From Klebsormidium nitens (Eukaryota > Plantae > Klebsormidiophyceae): DNA of 64,000 nt. The notes under the pieces were generated by a model. The model searched no databases, was not told the origin of the DNA, and was given only the letters and a program-made list of their open reading frames with translations. A program made the position numbers and the translations under genes. Location of the stretch: contig DF237387.1 in the NCBI GenBank assembly GCA_000708835.1, positions 1 through 64,000 on the forward strand. Direction: 5' to 3'. Shown piece by piece: positions 5,657-52,800 of this stretch (its first letter is position 1; each line of letters begins with the position of its first letter).

Positions 5657-6511
5657 TTACACCAACGATTCTTCTTCGGCTTCAGCTTTCGTTTCCAGCT
5701 TTTGTGATGACCCCACCATATCGTCAAGCAGCATGTCCTCAGCTTCCTCTGGGGGTACCGCCAAAACTTCGATCGACAAGGCCAAGCTAATTTGCAAAAC
5801 CGCAGCTCTTCTCCATGTTTGAAATTCCTCTGGTTGTGGAACTTTGCAACTGGTCACAATGAGACACTCAGGCAACCCGATACATCAGGATGTTAGCCAA
5901 TGAATTTCCACTTGCAGTGTCTTATGTGGGACTTCACCGCCAAGCCCTTCAAGCATCGAACGACCGAAAGGTAAGACAGTAGAGGGTTGACCTGAAAACC
6001 TGTGGGAGTAGGCATTCAAACGCGAAATTGCTCACCTCCGGATAATTTTGCTGGAGATGACGCAGTCCGCAAGACTTGTGCCGGTGACCAGCTAGTTTTC
6101 TAGCGTGTCCAAAATGAAGTTGACGAACATCAACTCCAGTCTCCGAGTGGCCTGGACAAAGTGGATTGAGGGTGAGGTTTGACACATGTCCGGCCCTGGA
6201 GGCATATTCTAAGCCTGCCAGAAAAGCGACGAGCTGTCAAGCAACGTCTAGAATACCTGCAAAAGAGGCAAACGCTGGGATTAATCAGCAAGCCACCTTA
6301 AAAAGTGCATCAGACGTGAGTAGCGACCAAAACACACCCCCCAACTTTCATAGCCACTAGAAAGCTCATGGCTCATGAACGCAGGCGCGAGAAAGAACTT
6401 CCGCATAAGCGCGCACAATACCTGCGAATTGGATGGATACCCCTTGGACGTCCGTTCCCGCACTTGACGCAGCTTCCCATCCGCCACCAACGATCGGAAG
6501 CCGAGGCGTTC
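5657..6511 (-). pseudogene. 3'-only pseudogenic fragment of ANGUSTIFOLIA (last three exons)
   Basis: Homologous to AN exons at 12254-13142. It has an in-frame TGG>TAG (6092-6094), a 1-nt deletion near that exon's end, and loss of the last acceptor (gcAA at ~5791 instead of gcAG). No upstream AN exons are present. Confidence 0.9.
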
Positions 6512-7698
6512 CTGGCCGGCTGAGGTGATGGTGTCATGGTGATTCCCGTCCCAGCGGATCCCCGGGGGGACGGGGAGTGCTGGCAACTCGAAGGGCTCCA
6601 GCGTGGGGGAGAAAGAAACAGCTTTGGTCAGCGGGGTTGAAAGATGTGACCAGGTTCTGTAACGCTCAGCCAAGCACGTAGGACCAAAACTTAATTCTAT
6701 CCTGACGTTGCTTGAAACATAGCAAGACGCCCCTTTAAGCAACCAGATCCAGATTACTATCGCCCTACTTCTATAGTCAATGAAACTCAACTCCCATCAT
6801 GCCCGCTTTAAGCTAGCGTTGCTGATGATTCAATACAAGTTGGTACTGGCGTCTTGAGAATGTCCAACTGCTGGTGTGCGAGGCTTTCTGACGTCGTTGA
6901 ATATTACTTGTTCAGATTTGTCACCGTGCTTTGCCGTCAGCGATCTTAACGGTCCTCCTTGCCTTGAGGTCGTAGAGACACACGATTATCAAGTTTCTAA
7001 TAAGGAGGCTGCTGCAACGTCGACTATATATTAGGAACTTCCAAGTGTATCGATTGCTAATATATAAGAGAGTCGCTGGTGTCAAGTTCGAGGCGATGGG
7101 ATTGCCTTGCAGGAAAACGAGCAACTTGTATCGCCTACCGGCCAGTAAGATCTTTGAAAGCCTATTGGTAGCTTATTAGTCAACTTAAAGGATTTTCAAC
7201 CGTCAATTATTAATTGCAAGACAATTCCCTGGACCACCCTGTAGCAGCATATGCCTTGTGTGACTCCCACTTGCCAGCATCCATTGGGCCCTGCAGCATG
7301 TCGGTTCTGGATGCAGAAATGGCCGGCATCGTCGTATTCTGTCTTGCAGTTGTTTGCAATTTTATAACTCACAGGCAGGAGCGAAAGTCGAAACTGTCCT
7401 CATTCGCTAGTGATCGGCTACCAGGAAAAGTGAATCCTGCCACTTCACTTCCAGAAAAGCCCTCTCACAACCCGGAAGCAACAGTCGATCGCGAAGCTGC
7501 CAGGGTAAGTGACTCAATGCCTCATAAAGAGAGCCAGATCTGGTTAGCTGTGGGTTTTGTGAGCGCAGCCTCAGCCTTAAGATTCATTTTGTGCGTGAAC
7601 TCATGACCACGAGGCAATCGCAGACCTTCTCACGATCCTCCATCCGAAAGAGCTTACCAGTGTTTTCTTATCTCTCAGCTTTTGGGAACTGTCTGCAG

Positions 7699-39900: not shown

Positions 39901-42577
39901 CGGCCGAATCTATGACCTCTTCTAGAGAACCTTTGTACGAACGTGACGCTTCGGCAGAAGTCTCAACGCAGACGTCTCCCCTCAGTGAAGAAGGCCGAAG
40001 CCGGTTGCAAGGAGAAAGCTCGGGTGGCGGCGCAATCGAAGGTCGCCACGAATCCGCTTATCGGGAGATTCGCGACAGCTGGCTTGAGGCGACCGAACGG
40101 CTGAGCGAGAACCTCCAGCGGCAGACCGACTTTCTCGGACGCCGGACGCGGCGCCTGCGGGGGTTGTCCGGAACGGCACCCAGTCTGTCGGCAGCCGCGG
40201 CAGCGGCGTCTGGCGTCGGTCCGATCGGTCCGCTCCCGAGTGACGGGGAGGCTGTGGAAACGGAAACGGAACGTTTGGGAAGCGGGTCAGGGGCTTCGCC
40301 TGATAGCACTGTGCCACGTGGAGTGTTGGGGTCAGGATCGGGGGTCCCAGGAACAACGGAGACGGAAACGGTCCTGGCAGAAACGATGGAGACGGTGACA
40401 CACCTGGACGCGCTAGAAACCTCCGTTGCGTCTGGGCTGGGGTCCGAGAGCGCCGGCGTGTGGGCTGCTCCAATTGAGAGGGATCCCCCGGCAGGCGAAG
40501 TTCGGCCTCAGAGCAGCGCCGCAATCGACGAGCTCCGCTCGCTGGTGCGTGCCGAGCGTGCTCGGGCAGAGTCCTTTGTGGCGCGTGCGCGCGCGCTCGT
40601 CGCCGAGGAGCGCGCGATCCGCGGCAACATTGGCGCGCTCGAGCGCGAGCTCGCAATTGCGGTCCGCGAACGGGACGCCGCCGTCCGCGAGCGGGACCGC
40701 ACGTCTGCGGTCCTCGGGCGCGCTCTCGCGGCGCTCTCGTCCGCCCGCGACCAGCTCGCAGCCCTCGGGGGAACCCTCCGAGCGGCAAACGCTGCCGCAC
40801 CTCCACGCGTTCCGTCAGCCGTTCCGGCCGGAACACTGACTGGTATCACCGGAACCGCCCCGGGAGTCGAACCCGAGGAGTACGAGCTCCTCGAGATGCT
40901 GGATTCCTCCCCCGGGGTGCCGTCCCCCGACCCACAACAAGCCCGGAAGGCGTGTCTGATGGCGTGCCTTTTACTCGGGAACCTGTCGCTGTGCCGCGGG
41001 GGGAGCGGCACGATGTTCGAGGGGGAGCGGTGGCCGGAGGCGATGGCGGGCGTGCTGCGGTTTGTGACGGGCCTGGGGGGGCTGGACGCGTTCTGGGCGA
41101 CCATGCTGTGGACGACGGTGCAGCCGCTGGTGGACCTGCTGCAGTCGACGGAGCCAGCAGTGCAGGTAGCACAACAATCTTGACGCAGTTCTCCCTTTAG
41201 TAGCGTGGGAAGTCGTGTGGAGTTCCTCGTGACCGTGGCATTTCGGAGCTTTTGTTGCGGCCTTTCTGAAAATTTTGTTTTTCAAAGTGAAGGAATTTCA
41301 ATCAGTTTGGTCCGAGCGAACATGCCAGAGGTTTCCGAGATTGTAAGCACGTTCGCGAAGTGATTGCCAGACTAGAGAGATCTGGAGAAGGAGCCTGTAC
41401 TTCGTTGCGAGGTTACAATTTTCAAGCCGCCGAGGGATTGTTAAAGGAATGGGTGGCTCACTAATGCAGGCCGGCTCTTCCCCCTTTGAATTGCTTCGCA
41501 TGCATTTCTTGCGCAGGCGCTGTCCCTGTTTATCGTGGGGGACTTATGTACAGGCAACGAGCATAAGCACAAGTTCATCATGGAAGGCGCGGTGCCGCAC
41601 CTTGGCCGCCTCTGCACCTCTTCGTCGCCCCTAGTCAGGTCGGCTGCCGCACACGAGTTCTCTGATCATTACAAACGATGAACGGAAACCGGCGCCAGAG
41701 ACCCTATTTCCACCCTATGCCCCTCGACCTATACCCCCGGAACTAGCAAGGAAGAGGTCGAGCCCACTGTCTTTGAAGGAGTCGATGTGACAGTCTCGCT
41801 ATTGACAAATGTCGACGTATCGTCGGGCTTGAACCGTTTGATGAGCTGCACTCGCTTTCTTTCAGCCAAGGGTTTTGACCAGAGTTTGGTGCTACTCAAA
41901 TCCTGGTATACGAGCTGCCAAGCTGCGAGCTTCAGCCCTGTTGAAAGCACACCTCTTTGAAGAGCCCTGTTGAAAGCACACCTCTTTGAAGACGCCAGGT
42001 CTGACTTCGCAAAAAGTTGGTGTCTCAAGACGTTGTGACATTCTCCGTATCCGAAACTGCGAAAGCACACTTCTGTGGTTGCTGCGGAAGTTCGTTATGT
42101 GGACTTGGCCGCTTTCGTTGCTTGCCGTGGCCGCCTGTTGGCGGCTAACAGTAGCAAGTGTTTGGGGCGGGACGATGGTTCTAGACAATGTGGCGTACAG
42201 CAATGAAAGGAGCAAAGGCGCCTTGACCTTGTCCGGGCACTGTCACAAACATCTCATCGCACTCTTACACGTTTCCGAATCGTTGCAGGAGGCTAGCACG
42301 GAACGCCCTTCTGCAGCTGGGGATGCGCCCCTCTGCCGTCGCCTCAGCGGGGGATCCCCCAGCGCAAGAAACGTCTCCCGAGGCCCGGCGCATGGGCAAT
42401 GATGACGTAAGCGAGTGTGTCATCTGCTGCGATGAGGTCAGCGCCGCAGCTTTCGAGCCGTGTGGCCACGTGGTCTCGTGCCTCCGGTGCGCGCAGTGCC
42501 TCGTCGCGAGGGGGGACAGATGTCCGCTATGCAGAGAAGCTATCGTTTCGATGAACATGCGTAAGAGTAGTTTCTGA
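36963..42577 (+). CDS. ARM-repeat protein with disordered/coiled-coil insertion and C-terminal C3HC4 RING finger (putative E3 ubiquitin ligase)
   Basis: ARM-like exons (LVEAGVIPALV, LVEQGGLSVLIKGL, ALAVWSLC, EGAVPHLGRLC), a heptad-rich segment (IGALERELAIAVRERDAAVRERD), and the RING CVICCDEVSAAAFEPCGHVVSCLRCAQCLVARGDRCPLCRE. Confidence 0.85.
41934..41991. repeat. Perfect 29-bp direct repeat x2 in the last intron of the ARM-RING gene
   Basis: agccctgttgaaagcacacctctttgaag occurs twice in tandem. Confidence 0.9.
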
Positions 42578-43434
42578 CAGGGGTATGTGGCATTTTGAGG
42601 TGGGGTGAGTACTAACGGAGCTGCGAGGTTCGAGAAATGGTCGGTGGTTATGGTGTCAGCAATTGCTGATCGGCATTTGGACGATAAGTTACCAGAGGAA
42701 GACGAAAGGCGGGTGACGCGAGGTACAAAAGAGGTAATCAAAGGTGTCGGGAAGATGAAAGCTCGCTCGATTTGAAAGTAGACGTGACCTGTAGGACTCG
42801 CTAGACATAGCTCCAGCTGGTTCACATTCGCTGTCTTTGTACATAATAAGCGGTGCCGAAGTTGGTTCGCTCATGGTCCTTCGGCCATGCTTAGAAATGT
42901 CAACGCAACATGTGCAAAAACCTTGGAATCCACATGCTCAAGGAGTCTCAGTCAGAGCCGTTGAAGACGTCAAGCTGTGCCCAGGTTGCTTCCTCTATAT
43001 AAGAATACATAGAGGACGCAGATAGTGGCAGCACGCATTTGCATGCGCATCCTGGCTGCCAGCATCGAGCCCACGGGACTAATGGCAGCCTTTGGCGAAT
43101 TGAAAGAAGCCCTAGTCGATCAACGCAGATGAGAATGATCGACTCGCAAGATCAATCGCGTGTGCCTTATATGGGCCTATAAAAGCTGTGTGCTATGTTA
43201 TGACCTGCCGCAACAATTGCGCACATCATGTTCGAGCATTCCTAACCTCTCTCGAAAGCATATGATGAAACTGGAGAGGGATTCGAAATTAACTATAGCT
43301 GTGAATTTCCCGCTTTCACGGATTGCCACAAAATCTAGGCCGCTGATTGCAAACACCATGCGGCTTGCTTGCTAGTGTACTGTTGTAGTGCATGTCGCAA
43401 CTCAACAAACTGATCGAACGTATAACTTGGCGCG

Positions 43435-43489
43435 GCGCGGCCGTTGTCCGCGCGCAGACAATTGCGCCGCGCGGCCGTTGTCCGCGCGC
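43435..43489. repeat. 21-bp GC-rich direct repeat (gcgcggccgttgtccgcgcgc) x2, ~290 bp upstream of the DUF262 gene
   Basis: Identical copies at 43435-43455 and 43469-43489. Confidence 0.8.
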
Positions 43490-43775
43490 GGCCGTGGCGA
43501 CGCTGAAGCCAGACGTGCCGGAGGTTTGGGAAGGGGTTTACAAGCCCCAATGGCAAGAGTAAGATTTGGCGGGTGCAAACTCGAGTGCAACACCAGCCTG
43601 AGTCACCTAATACGTGCTACCTATCATGACACTTTCACGAACAGCTTGTGTTGACAGTATTATAGAGGCCTATGCAGGAGCTGCATTCTAGCTCTCGCAG
43701 CTAGAATTTTGGCAGCTAGTGGTTTATGAGGAGGCGCCGCCGCCATCTCCTACCCCAGCCCCCCTGCATGGCGGC

Positions 43776-46700
43776 ATGGCTGCAGCCCTTCCCCTGCTGG
43801 ACAGCGTCTCCCGCGCGCTGACTCGCGGCAGCTTGCCTGCCTTGCGTGCAGCATACCGGCGCTGCTTGCATTGCCAATTGGGATTATCTGCAAGACCAGC
43901 TGCAAAGCGCGCAAGGGCTGCCAAAGGTCCTCCTTTTTCGTCCTTGCCAGCCATTCACCGTCGGCAGTCCGTATCCGAAAGTCCGGGACATAATTTCGCT
44001 GGTGGTGGTACTGAATTGCTGGCGTGCAAAAACCCGCCCACTGTTCTCTGGTCTCTAAGCTCGTTCCGCTCGCCGTTGCTGGGGGGGCCGATTTGCACCA
44101 CCTTCTCTCGCACACCACAGCTGACTGACAACCAATTTGGCCACAGCGTTTCTCCACTTTGCGCAGCAGCAATTGATGTGGAGCTCGAGGATGACTATGG
44201 CTACAGGGAGGCGGCAGAGTTGGACGAGGAGGAAGAGGAAAGGGAGCCCGCCCGAGCATCTCGGGATCACGGCACGGAGGAGCGCCTGGTGGCCAACGAG
44301 AAAATGCTGCAGATTAACAAAGCAGGTGACTGCACAGCCGAACCGTCACATCGTCACACGTTTGTTCCGCCGTACCACCACACGTGCTGGTTCAAATCAG
44401 GACTGAGGAGGAAGTTTGAAGTTCGTGAATCAGGACTAGTTGTCTCGCATAGAAGGGGTTCGATTCATCTACACACTTGTTCAACAAGTGTACGCCTTTG
44501 GAAAAGTTGACGCCTTCGCAGACAGGGCGTAATGCTCCATCGCTCACTATCGTCCATTCAATCTAAGCTTTCCTCTCTGTTTGCAGACTTTACAGTCAGT
44601 TCTTTACTGGACAAGATCTCACGGGCCAAGCTCAACCTGAAACCAGCATACCAGGTACGCTGCTCAGATGCGTTTCTCGGGATTATCACTACAACAACAT
44701 CTGATGTGACAAGCGGTGTCCCCTGCCGTCAATCCGTGTTTGCGTGTAGCTCAATCAGGCACGAGTAGTGTGAGCTTCTTTCGCAATCGGTCTTGGGTCA
44801 ACCAAGCCAGCGGGGCATAAGGCTTTGCTGTTGCATGTGCTCAATCGCTGCTGTCACATCCGGTGCAGAGGGACTACGTCTGGGACAAGAAGACGGCTAG
44901 CAAGCTCATAGAGTCACTCCTGGTGAGCTGACTCGTGTCCAGCATTTGCCATGGATGAGTCCACGTTGCACACTCTTGGCTTGCTGACTTCCTTTCATCC
45001 TGTGTCTCTGACTTCCTTCTTTGCGTTGCTTGTTTCCCAGTTGAGCCCCATCTTAGATGCATGCTCACCTTTCTTCGACTCCCTTACTGTGCGTTACTTA
45101 TTACGGAGGGGTACTGTGTGCAGCTCAACATTCCCGTCCCCACAATGTTCTTCCACGAAAAGGTATGCCCTGGCCCCCACTCTCCGCAACTTCCCGGCTT
45201 AGGCATCAGTCTCCCGTTTCAATTGTCCACCATGCCCTTTGTTTTCTTCTTAAATATACTGTACCCCAGTTTCAGATATCTGCCATAGAGCTACAACCGA
45301 TGGGTGTGGAATGGCTTGAACTCCCGAAATAACGGATGTTACTCTCGTGAGCATCGTGAAGGCGAATTCGAGGGTGCCAGGATTCCCTTTAGTGATCTAA
45401 AATGGGACGAATATCGAAGTCTTTGAATGATGAAAGGAATCAAACAATGCCATGCTTTTAGAACTAGAGGCGGTGACGATGCAGGAGCGCGGCAAGCTGG
45501 AGGTGGTCGACGGCAAGCAGCGCCTGACCAGCATATGGTCCTTCATCGTCGAGGAGCGCTTCCCGGACGGCACCCAATTTCACCTCACTGGCCTCGAAGT
45601 CTTGCGCAAGGTATGCCTAGAAACCTCTTCAGTTACATAGTTGTAGCGGGCTTTTGCGTGGTCGAGGTGGGCTCGAAGAAGCGCACTGGTTTGAGGCAGG
45701 CACAACGCCAGCTCGCAGCTGCAGCTATAAGGTCGAGGAACTTTCCTCGAATGCATGTTATCAATGGCCATCTTCGCTTGCTCGGCTGTTCGAAGGGAAG
45801 ATAAACTTTGATCTATGATCCTGTACAGGCAAGTAAGCCGCGCAACCTTATTTTGAAATGTCGGAGTACAAAGCTGTGCATCCTTTCGTTGACAAGAAGT
45901 CTTCGGTTTGACTACGAAACTTTCGTGTTGCTGCGCTAGCTGTTTGCATTGGTCCTAGGACTGCCAAGGATCGCTCTTTATATCGAACTCAGGAAAGATA
46001 CTTGCAAGGACGTTGATGAGATCACTTGACTAAGGACGGATATCGTTGGATTGGAGCTTAGGAGTTGGTAGGGGTGCGGAGGAGGTACCTTTTGCGGTCC
46101 GATTACTCGTAGCCTGACCTTATTCTCTTGGTCTATGAACACTTTCCTAAGATCCATGCTCTGTGTGTGCAGCTGAACGGTCTGCTGTACAGCGACTTGA
46201 ACGACGACCTCAAGGAGTCGTTGCAGGACTACGCGCTTAACGTGCACACCATCAGCCGCCACTCCGACGAGGACGTCGTGTTTGAGGTGCGTTTGCATTT
46301 CGTGATCGTTACAAAACGTGGAGCCACTCTCAAACAGCCATGTACCAAACCGTGGGAAGGCGAGTTCTAAGAATAAGTATCGAGGTCTTGCGCACACCGC
46401 GGTATCTCCTTGGAGTATCGGTTTCGGGGCACCGGCCTGGGATTCCCATCCCTTGGCACCGTTGCACCCCCTCTGATTCAATCATCACTTTGCAACACGT
46501 CCTTCGTAGCAAAGTCTGGGTCTTGTTGCGAGGTTCGTGCCTTAATATAGCTCAGGAAAGAAAGCCGTCGTACGATATCCTTTTCGGTTGCCCACGTAGA
46601 ACCTTGTCCCGCACGCCTATTCAGGTGTTCGATCCGGCCTCCCGTCCTGACCGACTCAGCGGCATCCGCCGGTCTTGGTACTTTTGGCCCCATATACCCA

Positions 46701-49155
46701 TACGCGGATTGTCCGATGCAAAGATGGATTGCAGTGAATGTTTATTTACCTTCCTTTCATGTTCAGGTGTTTGAGCGGCTCAACATGGGCTCCACGCAGC
46801 TGAACGAGCAGGAGCTGCGCAACTGCATCTACCAGGGCACGTACAACAGCCTCCTCGAAGACCTCGTCCTGGACGGCTACATGCTGCTCGCCATGCACGC
46901 CGACGCGCCGCACAAGAGGTGACTGGTCTCGAGTTGCATTTGATAAGCCTACAAGTCTGCGTAGGGCATGCATGGCCACGTCAAGCAGTCAACGGCGATG
47001 GGCCCCCGAGAGGCTGTACCTTAAGTTTAGTCCGTGAGAAAAGGCTTAGACCTACTGAGTGTGCATTCATGAAGCTTGGAGCTCCGACGCGCATTATTAA
47101 GGTGATTAAGTCGAGCTTTGTCCTTCACTTTCTTGGTAGCTTTTCCCGTCCTCAGGAGGCGGCACCCCGCAATTGCCTCCTCCGTTTCGTGGGACCTGTT
47201 CTCGCTTGCACACTGCGCCGCGCCCACTGTGATCCTGAAGCGTGCGTGGTGCCACGTGCAGGATGCGCGACCGGGAGCTGCTGCTGCGGTTTTTTGCGCT
47301 GCGCACGACCGGCGTCGAGGGCTTCATGCTGCCCGTCAAGACGTGGCTCAACGAACAGATGCGCCAGTGAGCCCCGCCCCAAATGATCCTGGAAGAAAAA
47401 AGCAGTAGCCCAAAACGTGACGACCAAATCCTGAGAAGGAAAAGGAAAAGTAACAGGACTGGGAAAGGCAAGATACAATCAGCCGCACTAAGGACCGATA
47501 CCCTGGACTCATAAGTTCACCTGTTTCACACCGCACCTAGACACCAAAATAAAGCGTACCCGTCCCGACAGGGTGAACTTGATGTTGTCCTGGCTTTACA
47601 CTAATATCTTGACTTGTCAGTATCCTTCTCCACATTACCCTATTTCCGCATGAACAAAGTTTTCCCTGACCCCTAAGTTGCAACTTCCAATCGTGTCCTT
47701 TAGTATGATCGCGCGTGGATCCCCTTGCGTGCAGCAACATGGACGTGTCGACCGAAGAGGCGGCAGCCATGAAGGCGGACTTCGTGCGGAGCGTCCGGCT
47801 GGCGGTGGAGGTCTTTGGAGAAGACCACGTATTCCGCGTCCTTCGGTGAGCCTGTTTCCGGCTTCTGGGTTTAGACTTTTGGGGTCGTTGATTCGTGATC
47901 TTCATTGACTGGGTCGCCGGCATAGAGAATTGTGCTGTGTGAGAAATGCTGATACGCATTGCGATAACAAACACGGAGGCTGCAGTCAATAGGGTAGGGT
48001 TCATTAGGACACCAAACCAACCGATGTGAAGGCGGTATTCAGTGCTGATAAGACCGAAAAGAGATTTGCATCTCCATTTTATGAGTTGCTTAGTCTCCTT
48101 CAATCCTGCGATCACGCGGATCGGCCACCATTGCAAGTTTCGTGACCGGCCGCAACGGCTACTGGGCTGCCTCCTAGCGTTGCGGCACCAGAAACGTCTC
48201 TTACGAAGGTGTAAGAGGACATCATATCGTGCGCGAGTCGCAGCAACTTCCAGTCTCCGAGCATTCGTTTGTTTCGACCACCAAGCCATTGAGCTTCATC
48301 TGTGTAAGCGAGTGACGGCTGAATTTGCGCAGGAGAGCATGCGGCAGCTGGGTAACTAGTGTGGGGGCGTGTCGTGCAGGCCCGGAGTGCGCAAGGCGGA
48401 CGAGCCCAAGTGGGACTCGGAAGTAAATGTCGCTCTCTGGGACACCGTCATGGTTAGTTCTGTATTCCCGCCGCACATCGCGCATCGCACATCACTTAGA
48501 CGATTTGTCGTTCTTTTTAAACCTCCGCGGCATTGGTTCAGATTTAGAAAGGTTAATCCAACAACTGGGTGTGCCAAGTGCGCTTGTTGTGCTCACAGAT
48601 CAGAAAAGCAGAAGGAGAAAGAATTGCGTCGAAAAAGTCGCTCCTACCGAAACGCGCTTAAACGGCTTGTTTGCCCTGTGCAGTTCGGTTTCTTGCAGTT
48701 TCAGGACGATGACGGCATCCTGGCGGCCCGGAGCGAAATCAAGAAAGCGCTCATGGACCTGATGACAAAGGTAAGCCAATGCGATGTGCCAAGAACATCC
48801 ACGTTCTGGCTGCTAATGCGCGACAGGTACTCCCATGTTTCGTCCTAGTGCGAAGTGGGAAAGAAACGAAGCAGACACGATGAAGCCTATGCTTATCAGG
48901 TGCTCTTGCAACAGAGAACCCTTCAGGGACCCTCTTTTAAGAACCAACTGATAATTTTCCCCTTCCTGATTGACATGGTATGCGAATCTTCTTAAGTGCA
49001 CTTTTGTTGAGACAATGAACTTATTCAATCTTCAAATGCAGGATACCGAATTCCGACGCGCACTCGTTTCCAGCAGAAAGGCACTCAAAACCCGCTGCGG
49101 TAAATGGAATAAAGCACTTGGTAAGGTCCTCGGTTCGCCACCTGTAAGAGACTAG
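43776..49155 (+). CDS. DUF262 (GmrSD/SspE N-terminal, ParB/sulfiredoxin-like NTPase) family protein with N-terminal transit-peptide-like extension, 12 exons, ~530 aa
   Basis: Exons 43776-44325, 44587-44654, 44869-44922, 45124-45162, 45485-45610, 46173-46286, 46767-46918, 47262-47366, 47735-47845, 48380-48452, 48684-48770 and 49042-49155 are all GT-AG and phase-consistent (1593 nt). Translation contains [46 protein letters not shown] and [13 protein letters not shown], i.e. the QR / DGxQR / FxxxN hallmark motifs. Confidence 0.92.
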
Positions 49156-49858
49156 GGGTCTCTCAAAAAAAGGTGGGACAACTCGAGATCGTCAAGGTCC
49201 AATACATGAAGTTGGAAAAGTTCAGTCGATGGTTCTAAAGTTGGATGCCATCAAGATGATGAGCACGTGAGAACGCGACCGGTGCTCCCATAAGATATAT
49301 GCCTACTGTACATTTGACTACGGGTCTTCCGTACCAAGCCACGCACCTGGGACAAACCAGAACTTCAATATGGATGACGTGCACTATCCCTTGCATTCAT
49401 ATGGCAAGAGCGCAAAAGTGGCCGGACACGCAGGAAATCAATAGAATTGCACATGTGTGGTCGACCGCCGCACACGCGCGGCAAAGTTCCCTGGCCTAGC
49501 TCACATGAGAACTGCATGAGTAAACCAGCTTTATAAAGGCCATATTTGACCACAGAGTCGTGTTGAACATGTGGAACGACTTGATTGCTATTATGTATAG
49601 GCCGCATGTACTGATGCACATGCAACATGGTTCATCCGCGGTTTTGCCGCTCTGGGGGAATAGATAACGCGTACGAGATTAGCCAATTACGCGAACAATG
49701 CTCACGCAGCCGTTAAATGCTCAATTGGATGATTAGGCTGCACGACCTTGCCCATAAACTGAGCGTCGAACCGGCGTACAACATCACGCAACTTTAGTTC
49801 CAAGACGCGGCCCCTTCGAACGCCACTTGAGCCCCTCCGAGCAGACTAGCAACTCCCA

Positions 49859-52800
49859 TTACGCCCCGTTCTGCTTCGTTTCCGTGCTCGCCCCCTCCAG
49901 CTTCCTCAGAAACTCCAACGTCTTAGTGTACGCAACATCTTGCCGGTTCAGCGGCTTGCACGCGTTCACGTGATCAGTCCCTCTGAGCACAATGAGATCC
50001 CCAAAGCCCGGATAGGCTGACTCTATTGGCACCACTTCCATGCGCAGCTTCACGCCGCCGTACGCCTCCACGACGGGGGTCACCTTATCCTCGCTGAAGT
50101 TGATGACGTCCACCTGGCGAACGCGCATTGGACGGCGGGTTAGGCAAGCAACCTCCGGTTAGGTTCCAAACCTCTGCTCTGACTTCTGCATGACGCCTCG
50201 GTTTACGTGCAGACGTGCAGGACCACTCCGAAGGCCCAAAGAAGGAGACGCTTGCGAACCATCTGTTTTGACGTGTATAGGACGCTGAATGCGCGTTAAC
50301 CCGAAAAACCCGGACATCACCCTACAGAGCCGGCTTGCTTACATTACCCTTCAGAAGCCAGTTTGAATGCCGGTTTGTTTGGGGACCGCGAAAACTGCCC
50401 ACCTGAGTTTGAGGCTTAGGACTAGGCTACGGAGTCTGCGTAATCAAGCAATTATGGAGACAAACATGTGTACATCAGTCGGATGCCCTGGGGATCGCCT
50501 CAAGCACTCAACCACTCACCCGGCCCTTCTGGTACTCCTTTTTGAGCAGCTTGTTGAGCTCCTCCAGCCGGGGTGAACCAGACCGCAGCTCGCCGACCTG
50601 CGAGTACCGGATGGGTTTTGCTCACCGAATTTATGCTTGTGCAAACCCTGCTCGAAAATGAGGCACTATCCATGGACAGTTTTCCGGAGATGTAGGGCTG
50701 GGTAGGCAGAAACAGAAGTGAGACGCAGGTGTCTAAGTTGACGTCTCCATCCGAGGCCGGTGGGAGGCCAGTAGAACAAACGGGCACTTGTTGGTGGTCA
50801 GGGAAGAGACGTGAGGATGACGCAAAGAACTAAGGGAAAAGCACACAATTACAGAATGGAGGCGAAACGGAGGTTAAGAACAGAGTTGGAAATAGTAGAA
50901 ACAACATCAATCTTTGAAGTCAACTCACTGCGGCCGCTGGCCGCAGCACGACGCCCATGCGCGAGGGCAGGTCCGCGAGGCGGCTGCCAAAGTGCGGGCA
51001 GCTGTAGAACACGATCCCCCGGATCCGCTCCCCGAGCGCCCGGTACTTCTCCTCCGACCGCACCAGCTGCAGCATCTGCTTCGCAACCAGGCCCCCCAGC
51101 GAGTGCGTCACAAAAATCACCGGGCGCTCGCCAACCCCGGCCGCGAGCAACTTTTCCAATAAGTGCGCGCTTAACTCTTGCAATGGGAGGGTGGCCCCCG
51201 ACCACTCAGTCAGGTTGGTTTTGTACTCGGTGGACAGCAACCGGGCGGAAGGCAAGTCTTTCGCGAGCCAGTCGGTGGGCCAGCAGCCGTCGCCCTCGCG
51301 CGGCCGGTCCTCTTCCCGGAGGTCTTCTACCACCCCCCCGGCTTTGATCGCACTCGTTTTGTCGTCCGTCATGCGCCAGGTTTTGTACGCGCCCCCCATG
51401 AGGCCGTGGATGAAAACCACGTCGAGTGCCGGCTCGGAGATCAACGGTTCAGGGCAATCCCCCTTTTCCGGGGGGTGGGGGAGCTGTACGGGGCTAGATC
51501 GGGCGCCGCTTGCGCCGTCGACCTGACCCTCTCCCGCTCTAGTTGCCGCTGAGTGCATGCTAGCCGGCGCGTTAGGCAACAGCTTCTCTACTCCTACTTT
51601 GACCGCTACTTTTTGCCGTGACGTGACCTCGCCCTGTCTGTCCGAAAACTCCTGCAGCACCTCGCGGACACTGTCCGCTGTATCACCCGGCTGATCATTC
51701 CCAGTGGCAGCGTCCGGTTTACTTACTCCCTCACTTGTTCCGCTCTTTCCGTTTCGTTCAGTTGCGTCGCCCTTACTATGCTGCGCACCAACTGCTCCGC
51801 TTCCCTCAGAGGCTATCCCCTCTTCCGCTTGTTCCGACGCTCCCACGCTCTCAGTTCCGAGCGACTCTTCTCCCTTCCCTTCGCCTATGACCGTCGCCGC
51901 TGGGTGCACCAATCCGGGCACTTCGCCCTCGCTCTCCTGCCCACTTTCTGCCTCCCCTTGGCCTGCGCTTCCTACTGGGACCTTCGCGCTCGCCGCTCTT
52001 CCACCGTTCGAAACTTCCCTCTCACTCGAAGCCCCCTTCAAAGCTCCGCCCTCCCTAGCTTCCTCAACTTTCGCTGCTTCGCCCGTTCCATTCGAACCCA
52101 GATCCGTTACTCCGGCCGATTCGTTCGCAATCTGACCTCTCGACCCTCCACTCAAGCACGTGCGAAAGTGCGGGGCGGTCGGATCAAGCAGGTAGATTCC
52201 GTCAAGGTATCGAGGCCAAGGTTTCAGTTCCAGCCCCTCCCCCTCTCCCGTCCCGCACCGCTTCCAAAACGCGAGGTGCAACAGCGTCTCCTTCGCAAAA
52301 CTCCGCAGTTTCAGATCGCCTTTCTGGGCTGCCACCCGCCCGTCGGCGACCTCTTCCAGCCAGTTCACCAGCGCCTGGTCGCCCCCAAGAAGCGCCCCCA
52401 ACTGCGGATGAATCGACAAATTTGCCAGAACTCGCAGCGCATGACGCTTCACATACGGCCGTTTCTGCTTCGGCGGCTTCGCGGGCGCTTTCCCGTTCTC
52501 CTTCGTCACCCCCGCGCCCTCGCGCGCGCTCTGCCACTGCTGCGTTGACACCGTCGCGCCGAAGTGGGCCGATCTCAGAAACTGTGTCAAGAGCGCGTAA
52601 CCCCCCGCGTCCAGCACGCGCCGCTGCCGCGCGCCGTCCTCGGCGATCACCTCCGCCAGCGCTTTCAAAGCGTTCGACACCGCGAGCAAAACGTCCGCTT
52701 CGGCGACCGGCTTCGGCGGGCCCTTCCTGCCGCCCCCGAACGAAAACCACCCGCGCTTCTCCGGCGCCACGTCAGCTGCCACGTCAGCACCAACCGTCAC

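Follow-up and report, generated by a model that had tools for sequence, protein, structure and literature searches.

A nuclease-less DUF262 protein family of the green lineage and its candidate organelle import signal in Klebsormidium nitens

The window analyzed here, a 64,000-nucleotide stretch of the genome of the streptophyte alga Klebsormidium nitens (positions 1 to 64,000 of contig DF237387.1), contains a 12-exon gene on the + strand (43776-49155) that encodes a 530-amino-acid (aa) ParB-like nucleoside triphosphatase (NTPase) of the DUF262/GmrSD_N family. We find that its first exon consists of a basic, acid-poor leader followed abruptly by an acidic tract, and we suggest that the two have different histories: the acidic tract would be the old bacterial N-terminus, and the leader would have been gained in the green lineage as an organelle import signal. 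Targeting to an organelle, whichever of the two it is, is comparatively well supported and probable. The best combined explanation, that the leader is a cleaved import signal, with the plastid as favored and possibly not sole destination, on an NTPase that has lost its HNH nuclease, we hold with middling confidence.

Results

Exon 1 encodes a basic leader and an acidic tract

Exon 1 spans 550 nt (43776-44325), has a GT directly 3' of it, and belongs to a 269-codon open frame of a length reached in 0 of 2000 shuffles. The original prediction had noted a leader of ~130 residues with four acidic residues, opening at ATG 43776 and running abruptly into an acidic tract, and the observation is confirmed. 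Residues 1-130 (43776-44165) contain 15 K+R and 4 D+E, together with 23 S+T, 17 A, 18 L, and 13 P; the 53 residues that follow (131-183; 44166-44325) contain 18 D+E. No Pfam family matched exon 1. An AlphaFold2 (AF2) model of the exon, for which the alignment held only three sequences, gave a low-confidence helix at residues 4-37, no fold over residues 39-126 (predicted local distance difference test, pLDDT, < 50), and a linker helix at residues 167-182 (pLDDT 84).

The leader is transcribed and constrained as coding sequence

We compared the window over 43400-49399 with transcript contigs from 4 runs belonging to 4 studies. All 11 GT..AG introns of the gene (11/11) were spliced out. These runs are available as contigs only, which give neither transcript ends nor levels, and their RNA origin was our guess; we took them as RNA because spliced joints are impossible from DNA. 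The longest contig of each run (X1, X3, X7, and X10) starts at 43642-43645 and continues without interruption as far as the exon 1 donor at 44325. The extension is therefore not removed by an intron; such removal had been named in advance as counting against it. An in-frame TAG lies at 43689, and the first in-frame ATG after it is ATG 43776, whose context (ggcggcATGgc, with G at -3 and +4) is the best among the candidate starts.

Relatives of exon 1 were restricted to two proteins, P0001 and P0002, both in a word search of 5.8 billion proteins and in an exhaustive search of 1.84 billion representatives. P0001 (70% identical) lies on the Logan genomic contig L001, and P0002 (37-39% identical) on the metagenome contigs L002 and L003 of the Joint Genome Institute (JGI); both loci are orthologues that share the exon layout of the window gene. 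Between the window and L001, the exons are 86-96% identical at the nucleotide level and exon 1 is 77.5% identical (aligned over 43753-44336); no alignment could be made for the introns or for the 5' leader. Across exon 1 the frame is kept: the gaps are 6, 3, and 3 nt long, and differences at the three codon positions are 0.21, 0.13, and 0.37. The ratio of nonsynonymous to synonymous substitution rates (dN/dS) is 0.24 over exon 1. For residues 1-130 it is 0.33 against L001 and 0.40 against L002; for residues 131-183 it is 0.10 against L001 (not computable against L002); and for the DUF262 exons it is 0.025 and 0.114, respectively. Given the kept frame, the third-position excess, and these ratios, the leader is coding and under purifying selection, and it evolves much faster than the domain. 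That the leader is a transit-peptide exon borrowed from another gene was considered and rejected, as exon 1 matched only its two orthologues among all the proteins searched.

Leader-bearing orthologues extend from prasinophytes to ferns

A metagenome scan with an alignment of exon 5 recovered 80 marine and estuarine loci, all intronless open reading frames (ORFs), 51-56% identical to residues 178-524 and with a GC content of 0.43-0.66. The same alignment scanned against genome contigs gave a sole match, a false positive: an OsmC-like ORF that shares K-L-E-V-V-D-G-K. A word search with one of the metagenome ORFs supplied named relatives, namely Mamiellaceae sp. RCC2288, Cymbomonas, Mesostigma, Chara, Spirogloea, Marchantia (MPTK1_5g12430), Riccia, Calypogeia, and Adiantum. 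The best 120 matches, where only top candidates were scored, included no seed plant, moss, or core chlorophyte, which is not proof of absence. Database matches came from Chara, Marchantia, and further annotated genomes and none from Klebsormidium; possibly the locus has an incomplete public gene model or none, or the proteome lies outside the collection.

We built a quick maximum-likelihood tree of 59 sequences with a short search. The green sequences form one clade (Shimodaira-Hasegawa-like approximate likelihood-ratio test, SH-aLRT, 99), which is sister to bacterial proteins in which DUF262 is fused to an HNH nuclease (SH-aLRT 92), with a HEPN-linked group as the outgroup. Streptophyte branching follows the species tree (Klebsormidium, Chara, Spirogloea, and then liverworts and ferns), and Mesostigma sits on a long branch. 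As bacterial sampling was biased by the queries and the search was short, the tree does not resolve the donor. The topology indicates an old green-lineage family, not a Klebsormidium oddity or a recent acquisition, and a recent Klebsormidium-specific horizontal transfer is rejected by the green-lineage clade.

We then compared leaders across the annotated orthologues and the full-length metagenome ORFs examined. Those preceding the domain are 80-320 residues long and are not alignable between lineages. Over their first 40 residues most orthologues carry a net positive charge, contain 0-2 acids, and abound in S, T, A, and R. In several, a V-R-A-type site occurs 35-75 residues from the N-terminus and is followed by an acidic region and then the domain; examples are V-R-A/L-L-G-D in Mamiellales-like loci, Q-V-R-A/A-A-G in RCC2288, and D-V-R-A/A-A-G in Spirogloea. 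An AF2 model of the Marchantia orthologue is disordered over residues 1-101 and folded over residues 102-456 (pLDDT ~90), and the Mamiellales-like and liverwort (Marchantia) leaders look unstructured and are S/T/P-rich and free of predicted helix. As a separate observation, the Bathycoccus-like orthologues (L048, L087, P0133, and P0136) carry long poly-Glu runs and Lys-rich stretches between leader and domain, as well as a conserved L-L-G-D-x-E-D-K-x-L-W-D-E motif in common with Mamiellales-like loci.

Bacterial homology begins at the acidic tract and ends before a nuclease that green proteins lack

The spliced 530-aa protein was analyzed by BLAST and in the tree; Pfam was run on exon pieces, and orthologues stood in for the Pfam and fold work. 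Exons 2-12 encode a DUF262/GmrSD_N ParB-like domain and a helical C-terminal domain. Against PF03235 (GmrSD_N), exon 5 scored 27.1 bits (E 5.5e-6) and exon 7 scored 15.8 bits, values for exon pieces set against a whole-protein cut-off of 33.2 bits. Orthologues at 59-63% identity score 93-107 bits on the same model, and the Marchantia orthologue (62% identity) scores 106.7 bits. Exon 5 alone retrieved nothing useful among solved structures, and a tblastn search of plasmids with exon 7 retrieved intronless DUF262-only genes.

The spliced protein aligns end to end with a 366-aa Burkholderia plasmid protein, in which residues 35-365 pair with algal residues 184-523 (35% identity, E 8e-59). The bacterial family comprises 4607 proteins at E <= 1e-10, and its first 34 residues average 9.6 D+E versus 4.2 K+R. 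More generally, alignments with bacterial DUF262 proteins begin at algal residues 137-184, the best reaching residue 137, and the first 40 residues of the bacterial relatives hold 10-13 acids, a pattern opposite to that of the green leaders. Because the nearest bacterial relatives start with an acidic tail, we conclude from these alignments that the acidic tract most probably is the ancestral N-terminus, with the leader added in front of it; residues 131-183 would belong to the mature protein. Met177, 7 residues ahead of the domain, was tried as the ancestral start and rejected, as the nearest bacterial proteins have another 35-60 acidic residues ahead of it and other streptophytes have Val or Thr at this position.

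The closest bacterial proteins (37-42% identity) are DUF262 proteins with a C-terminal HNH domain (P0206-P0242) located at ~residues 406-450, which bears out the proposed derivation from a restriction system. One cluster of these fusions consists of Pseudanabaenales and Leptolyngbyaceae cyanobacteria. The C-terminus of the Klebsormidium protein corresponds to bacterial residue 385, and green proteins stop where the HNH domain would start. A nuclease domain, whether DUF1524 or HNH, is absent, and Pfam returns only PF03235 in the green orthologues; the description of the protein as lacking a fused nuclease therefore holds. Its absence very likely reflects loss of the HNH domain, judging from the position at which the green proteins end.

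A partner encoded nearby was also sought. In four bacterial loci (L008-L011; gene at 6001-7101), a 366-aa DUF262 protein that is 66-91% identical across very different bacteria is followed 0-2 nt downstream by a 232-aa HEPN gene (PF18737/PF18735) whose product has an R-x4-H motif. Abi, Vsr, ParE, and insertion sequence (IS) elements surround the pair, which resembles a mobile two-gene defence module; a DUF262-HEPN operon type was listed by Anantharaman et al. 2013 (PMC3710099). No HEPN homologue was found in the 64-kb window or in L001-L003 by tblastn with three HEPN proteins (best E 0.2), and a nearby HEPN partner is rejected for the window and the orthologous loci.

The leader resembles an organelle import signal, with the plastid favored

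Two properties of the leader are those expected of an import signal. First, it is an N-terminal extension relative to prokaryotic homologues. Second, it is net basic, acid-poor, rich in S, T, A, and R, and without a stable fold, and these properties are kept across orthologues where the sequence is not. Basic, acid-poor, disordered leaders of unrelated sequence constitute a classic import-signal signature, and we infer import into an organelle. This much of the proposed chloroplast transit peptide stands. Its assignment to the chloroplast over the mitochondrion is less well supported, as a helix is followed by disorder: the helix from residue 4 is mitochondrial-like and the ~90 disordered residues after it are plastid-like. 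Plastid and mitochondrial signals of algae, streptophyte algae among them, have overlapping charge and S/T content in their first 20 residues (PMC12531127), and because of this overlap the two destinations are not separable from algal sequence. Chlamydomonas chloroplast signals are longer than mitochondrial ones (49 residues on average), are less helical, and need unstructured flanks (PMC10363480), and it is these that leaders of great length and little structure resemble more. We favor the plastid because the Mamiellales-like and liverwort leaders look unstructured and hydroxylated, some of the bacterial kin are cyanobacterial, and the distribution is so far green-only; the plastid specifically is, on this reasoning, about evenly poised.

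Two candidate processing sites can be recognized. The junction at residues 124-140 (44145-44195) contains a stromal-peptidase-type candidate, L128-C129-A130/A131, at the boundary of bacterial homology. The pattern P-L-x-A-A..V-E.E-D is invariant here in three orthologues, and L-x-A/A is conserved at 128-131. The cut originally proposed lies between A131 and A132; a site at ~residue 130 survives as one candidate. The other is R45-A46-R47-A48/A49 (43908-43922), which has Arg at -2, there being none near the 130/131 site, and resembles the V-R-A sites of other orthologues.

Several points weigh against import in general or against the plastid in particular. With its 130 residues the leader is on the long side for a transit peptide, position 9 keeps an acidic residue, and the three close orthologues show unusually high conservation over residues 1-45. 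The predicted helix from residue 4 is of the mitochondrial kind. G+C content at third codon positions (GC3) is 0.57 in residues 1-130 and 0.81 in the other exons. Two orthologues are exceptions: the N-terminus of the Spirogloea copy P0197 is acidic, and four acids fall within the first 40 residues of the Chara model; either case may be an annotation problem. Targeting predictors lose reliability far from their training species (PMC11581415). Finally, literature searches on DUF262/GmrSD in connection with the chloroplast or plastid, and on MPTK1_5g12430, yielded no paper, localization experiment, or proteomic or imaging record for any member of the family.

The first alternative to be weighed is that the leader is not an import signal at all, and instead gives a nuclear or cytosolic protein a disordered region for regulation or interaction, such as a basic DNA-binding or nuclear-localization segment next to an acidic patch. 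Residues 44-47 (K-R-A-R) match a minimal nuclear localization pattern, Lys-rich runs precede the domain in the Bathycoccus-like orthologues, conservation of the first 45 residues exceeds that of usual transit peptides, and disorder alone does not discriminate. Yet K-R-A-R is not retained in the 70%-identical orthologue; lineages share the composition of the leader and not its sequence, which is unusual for an interaction motif; and acid-free, S/T/R/A-rich first 40 residues together with recurrent V-R-A sites are typical of import signals. We consider this alternative unlikely, though it is the strongest of those that we weighed.

Somewhat less probable again is an exclusively mitochondrial presequence, in which the amphipathic, Arg-rich helix at residues 4-37 would direct import, the matrix peptidase would cut at 48/49, and residues 49-130 would be a disordered linker. 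Residues 1-40 contain 6 K+R, 1 D+E, 8 A, and 9 L, and a hydrophobic moment of 0.64 at residues 11-28 is conserved in the orthologue. Chlamydomonas mitochondrial signals are ~80% helix from the N-terminus onward and average 37 residues (PMC10363480), which fits the AF2 helix, and Arg stands at -2 of the 48/49 site; the overlap of signal types in algae also leaves room for this alternative. However, residues 1-20 have a net charge of just +1 with 4 S/T, as many as 105 of 2000 shuffles reached the moment, the leaders of Mamiellales and Marchantia are rich in S/T/P and lack a predicted helix, and both the green-lineage distribution so far and the cyanobacterial affinity of some bacterial kin point away from it.

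Least of all do we credit translation from Met177 (44304-44306), the only downstream in-frame ATG of exon 1, with everything upstream of it untranslated: three out-of-frame ATGs precede ATG 43776, Met177 lies just before the domain and is kept in the three Klebsormidium-type orthologues, and GC3 upstream of it is low, yet the kept frame, third-position excess, and dN/dS of exon 1, the failure of the introns and 5' leader to align where exon 1 does, the superior context of ATG 43776, and the replacement of Met177 by Val (Marchantia, Riccia, Calypogeia, Adiantum, and Spirogloea) or Thr (Chara) in streptophytes whose annotated proteins start far upstream, as well as its absence from Mamiellales orthologues, make this very improbable.

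The NTPase motifs are intact and include a clade-specific change

The Klebsormidium protein possesses the QR pair, the DGxQR-type pentapeptide, and F-E-R-L-N (FxxxN), corresponding to the QR, DGQQR-type, and FxxxN motifs defined for GmrS (PMC4619093). A 40-sequence alignment of green and bacterial proteins shows no variation at Q, R, D, G, Q, and R and almost none at F..N. The pentapeptide, encoded in exon 5 (45509-45523), is DGKQR in 80/80 green proteins, whereas DGQQR is found in 34/36 HNH fusions and 120/120 HEPN-linked proteins. This clade-specific change sits in the predicted NTP-binding loop. The closest solved structures are BrxU (7P9K), then SspE, and then ParB CTPase domains, with low global TM-scores. 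The mature protein might act as an NTP-gated DNA clamp, a sensor, or a weak ParB-fold nickase.

Gene model, 5' leader, and surroundings

Beyond exon 1, splice joints seen in four runs define exons 2 (44587-44654), 3 (44869-44922), 4 (45124-45162), 5 (45485-45610), 6 (46173-46286), 7 (46767-46918), 8 (47262-47366), 9 (47735-47845), 10 (48380-48452), 11 (48684-48770), and 12 (49042-49155, with the stop at 49153-49155), all on the + strand; exons 5 and 7 are those that match PF03235. Unspliced contigs of low depth (5-12 versus 40-90 for spliced ones) occur in several runs over introns 8, 9, and 10 (47337-47764, 47817-48408, and 48423-48712), and may reflect retained introns, pre-mRNA, or residual genomic DNA.

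The 5' untranslated leader is at least ~131 nt long. Its minimum extent is 43642-43775, where 43642 is taken as a minimum because contigs cannot prove a transcription start. Its three out-of-frame upstream ATGs (43672, 43726, and 43768) sit in weaker contexts than ATG 43776. The last of them opens a 17-codon upstream ORF (uORF; 43768-43821, + strand) that overlaps the main start codon, and 17-codon overlapping uORFs also occur in both orthologues (L001, ATG 210, 210-260; L002, ATG 6158, 6158-6208). The uORF ATG lies 7-8 nt 5' of the main start in 3/3 Klebsormidium-type orthologues, although in L002 it stands in another frame with respect to the main ORF. The overlapping uORF might tune start-site choice, and re-initiation at Met177, if it occurs, could give a leaderless isoform.

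Further upstream, a 21-nt G+C-rich direct repeat, GCGCGGCCGTTGTCCGCGCGC, occurs at 43435-43455 and 43469-43489, with copies 34 nt apart, ~150-200 nt upstream of the transcript contig starts; it is possibly a promoter element or a small-repeat remnant. The neighbors of the gene are a C3HC4 RING-finger-like ORF (42323-42577, +) and an ORF just past its 3' end (49859-50128, -), neither of which resembles a nuclease or HEPN partner. The orthologue on metagenome contig L002 has other neighbors (GT47, EGF-like, and PHD).

Discussion

We propose that exon 1 joins an old acidic tail (residues 131-183) to a leader (residues 1 to ~130) gained in the green lineage, in which a basic N-terminal segment precedes an extended disordered stretch rich in S and P; this leader would direct the protein to the plastid, dual targeting being possible. 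Cleavage after import would occur at L-C-A/A (130/131) or earlier at R-A-R-A/A (48/49) and would release a ParB/Srx-fold NTPase of ~400 residues with its QR, DGKQR, and FxxxN motifs intact. This enzyme would descend from a bacterial, possibly cyanobacterial, DUF262-HNH restriction-type enzyme that lost its nuclease.

What such a protein would do is a matter for a more tentative suggestion. A nucleus-encoded ParB-like NTPase found from prasinophytes to ferns, domesticated from a (cyano)bacterial DUF262-HNH enzyme by loss of the nuclease and gain of a transit peptide, may act in the plastid on organellar DNA, in nucleoid organization, segregation, or the sensing of modified or foreign DNA; we regard this extended proposal as doubtful in its entirety. 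The roles in the nucleoid, in surveillance, and in DNA elimination put forward in the original prediction are speculative. If true, the proposal would add an unrecognized factor to organelle genome maintenance and provide a case in which a eukaryote re-used a bacterial defence gene. Eukaryotic re-use of bacterial defence genes is an active topic, and the make-up of plastid nucleoids is poorly known in algae and early land plants. New here is a coherent and apparently unstudied green-lineage family, marked by a nuclease-less DUF262, a clade-specific DGKQR, and a leader, whose clade corrects the idea of a Klebsormidium-specific transfer. One member resides in the tractable model Marchantia (MPTK1_5g12430), so that the localization hypothesis is directly testable.

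Among known systems, the bacterial DUF262-HNH fusions are the most similar. They share with the green proteins 37-42% identity over DUF262 and the helical region, an acidic N-terminal tail or tract, and the QR/DGxQR/FxxxN motifs; the green proteins differ in lacking HNH, in bearing a basic leader of 80-320 residues, and in having DGKQR instead of DGQQR. BrxU/GmrSD type IV restriction enzymes (7P9K) and SspE (6JIV) are the best structure matches (profile E 2.7e-4; Foldseek E 7e-6, probability 1.0) and share the ParB/Srx-fold NTPase domain and the same signature motifs. Identity to them is 13-14% and the global TM-score is 0.24, and unlike them the green protein has no DUF1524/HNH and is eukaryotic, intron-rich, and leader-bearing. 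The DUF262-HEPN (MAE_28990/RiboL-PSP) modules of defence islands have a 366-aa DUF262 partner with an acidic N-tail that aligns to residues 184-523; they are more distant than the HNH fusions, forming the outgroup of the tree, and no HEPN accompanies the gene in the window or the orthologous loci.

With regard to targeting, the leader resembles green algal and plant transit peptides and presequences in being N-terminal, basic, acid-poor, hydroxylated, disordered, fast-evolving, and absent from bacterial homologues, and its candidate sites share with such signals the small-residue V/L-x-A/A type (PMC10363480, PMC12531127). It departs from the usual transit peptide in its length (130 residues) and in the conservation of its first 45 residues among close relatives. 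Plant sulfiredoxin is an organelle-located ParB/Srx-fold protein and thus a precedent for a protein of this fold acting in plant organelles. Nuclease activity has been described for plant sulfiredoxin (PMC4619093). It differs from the green protein in being small and single-domain and in standing outside the DUF262 family.

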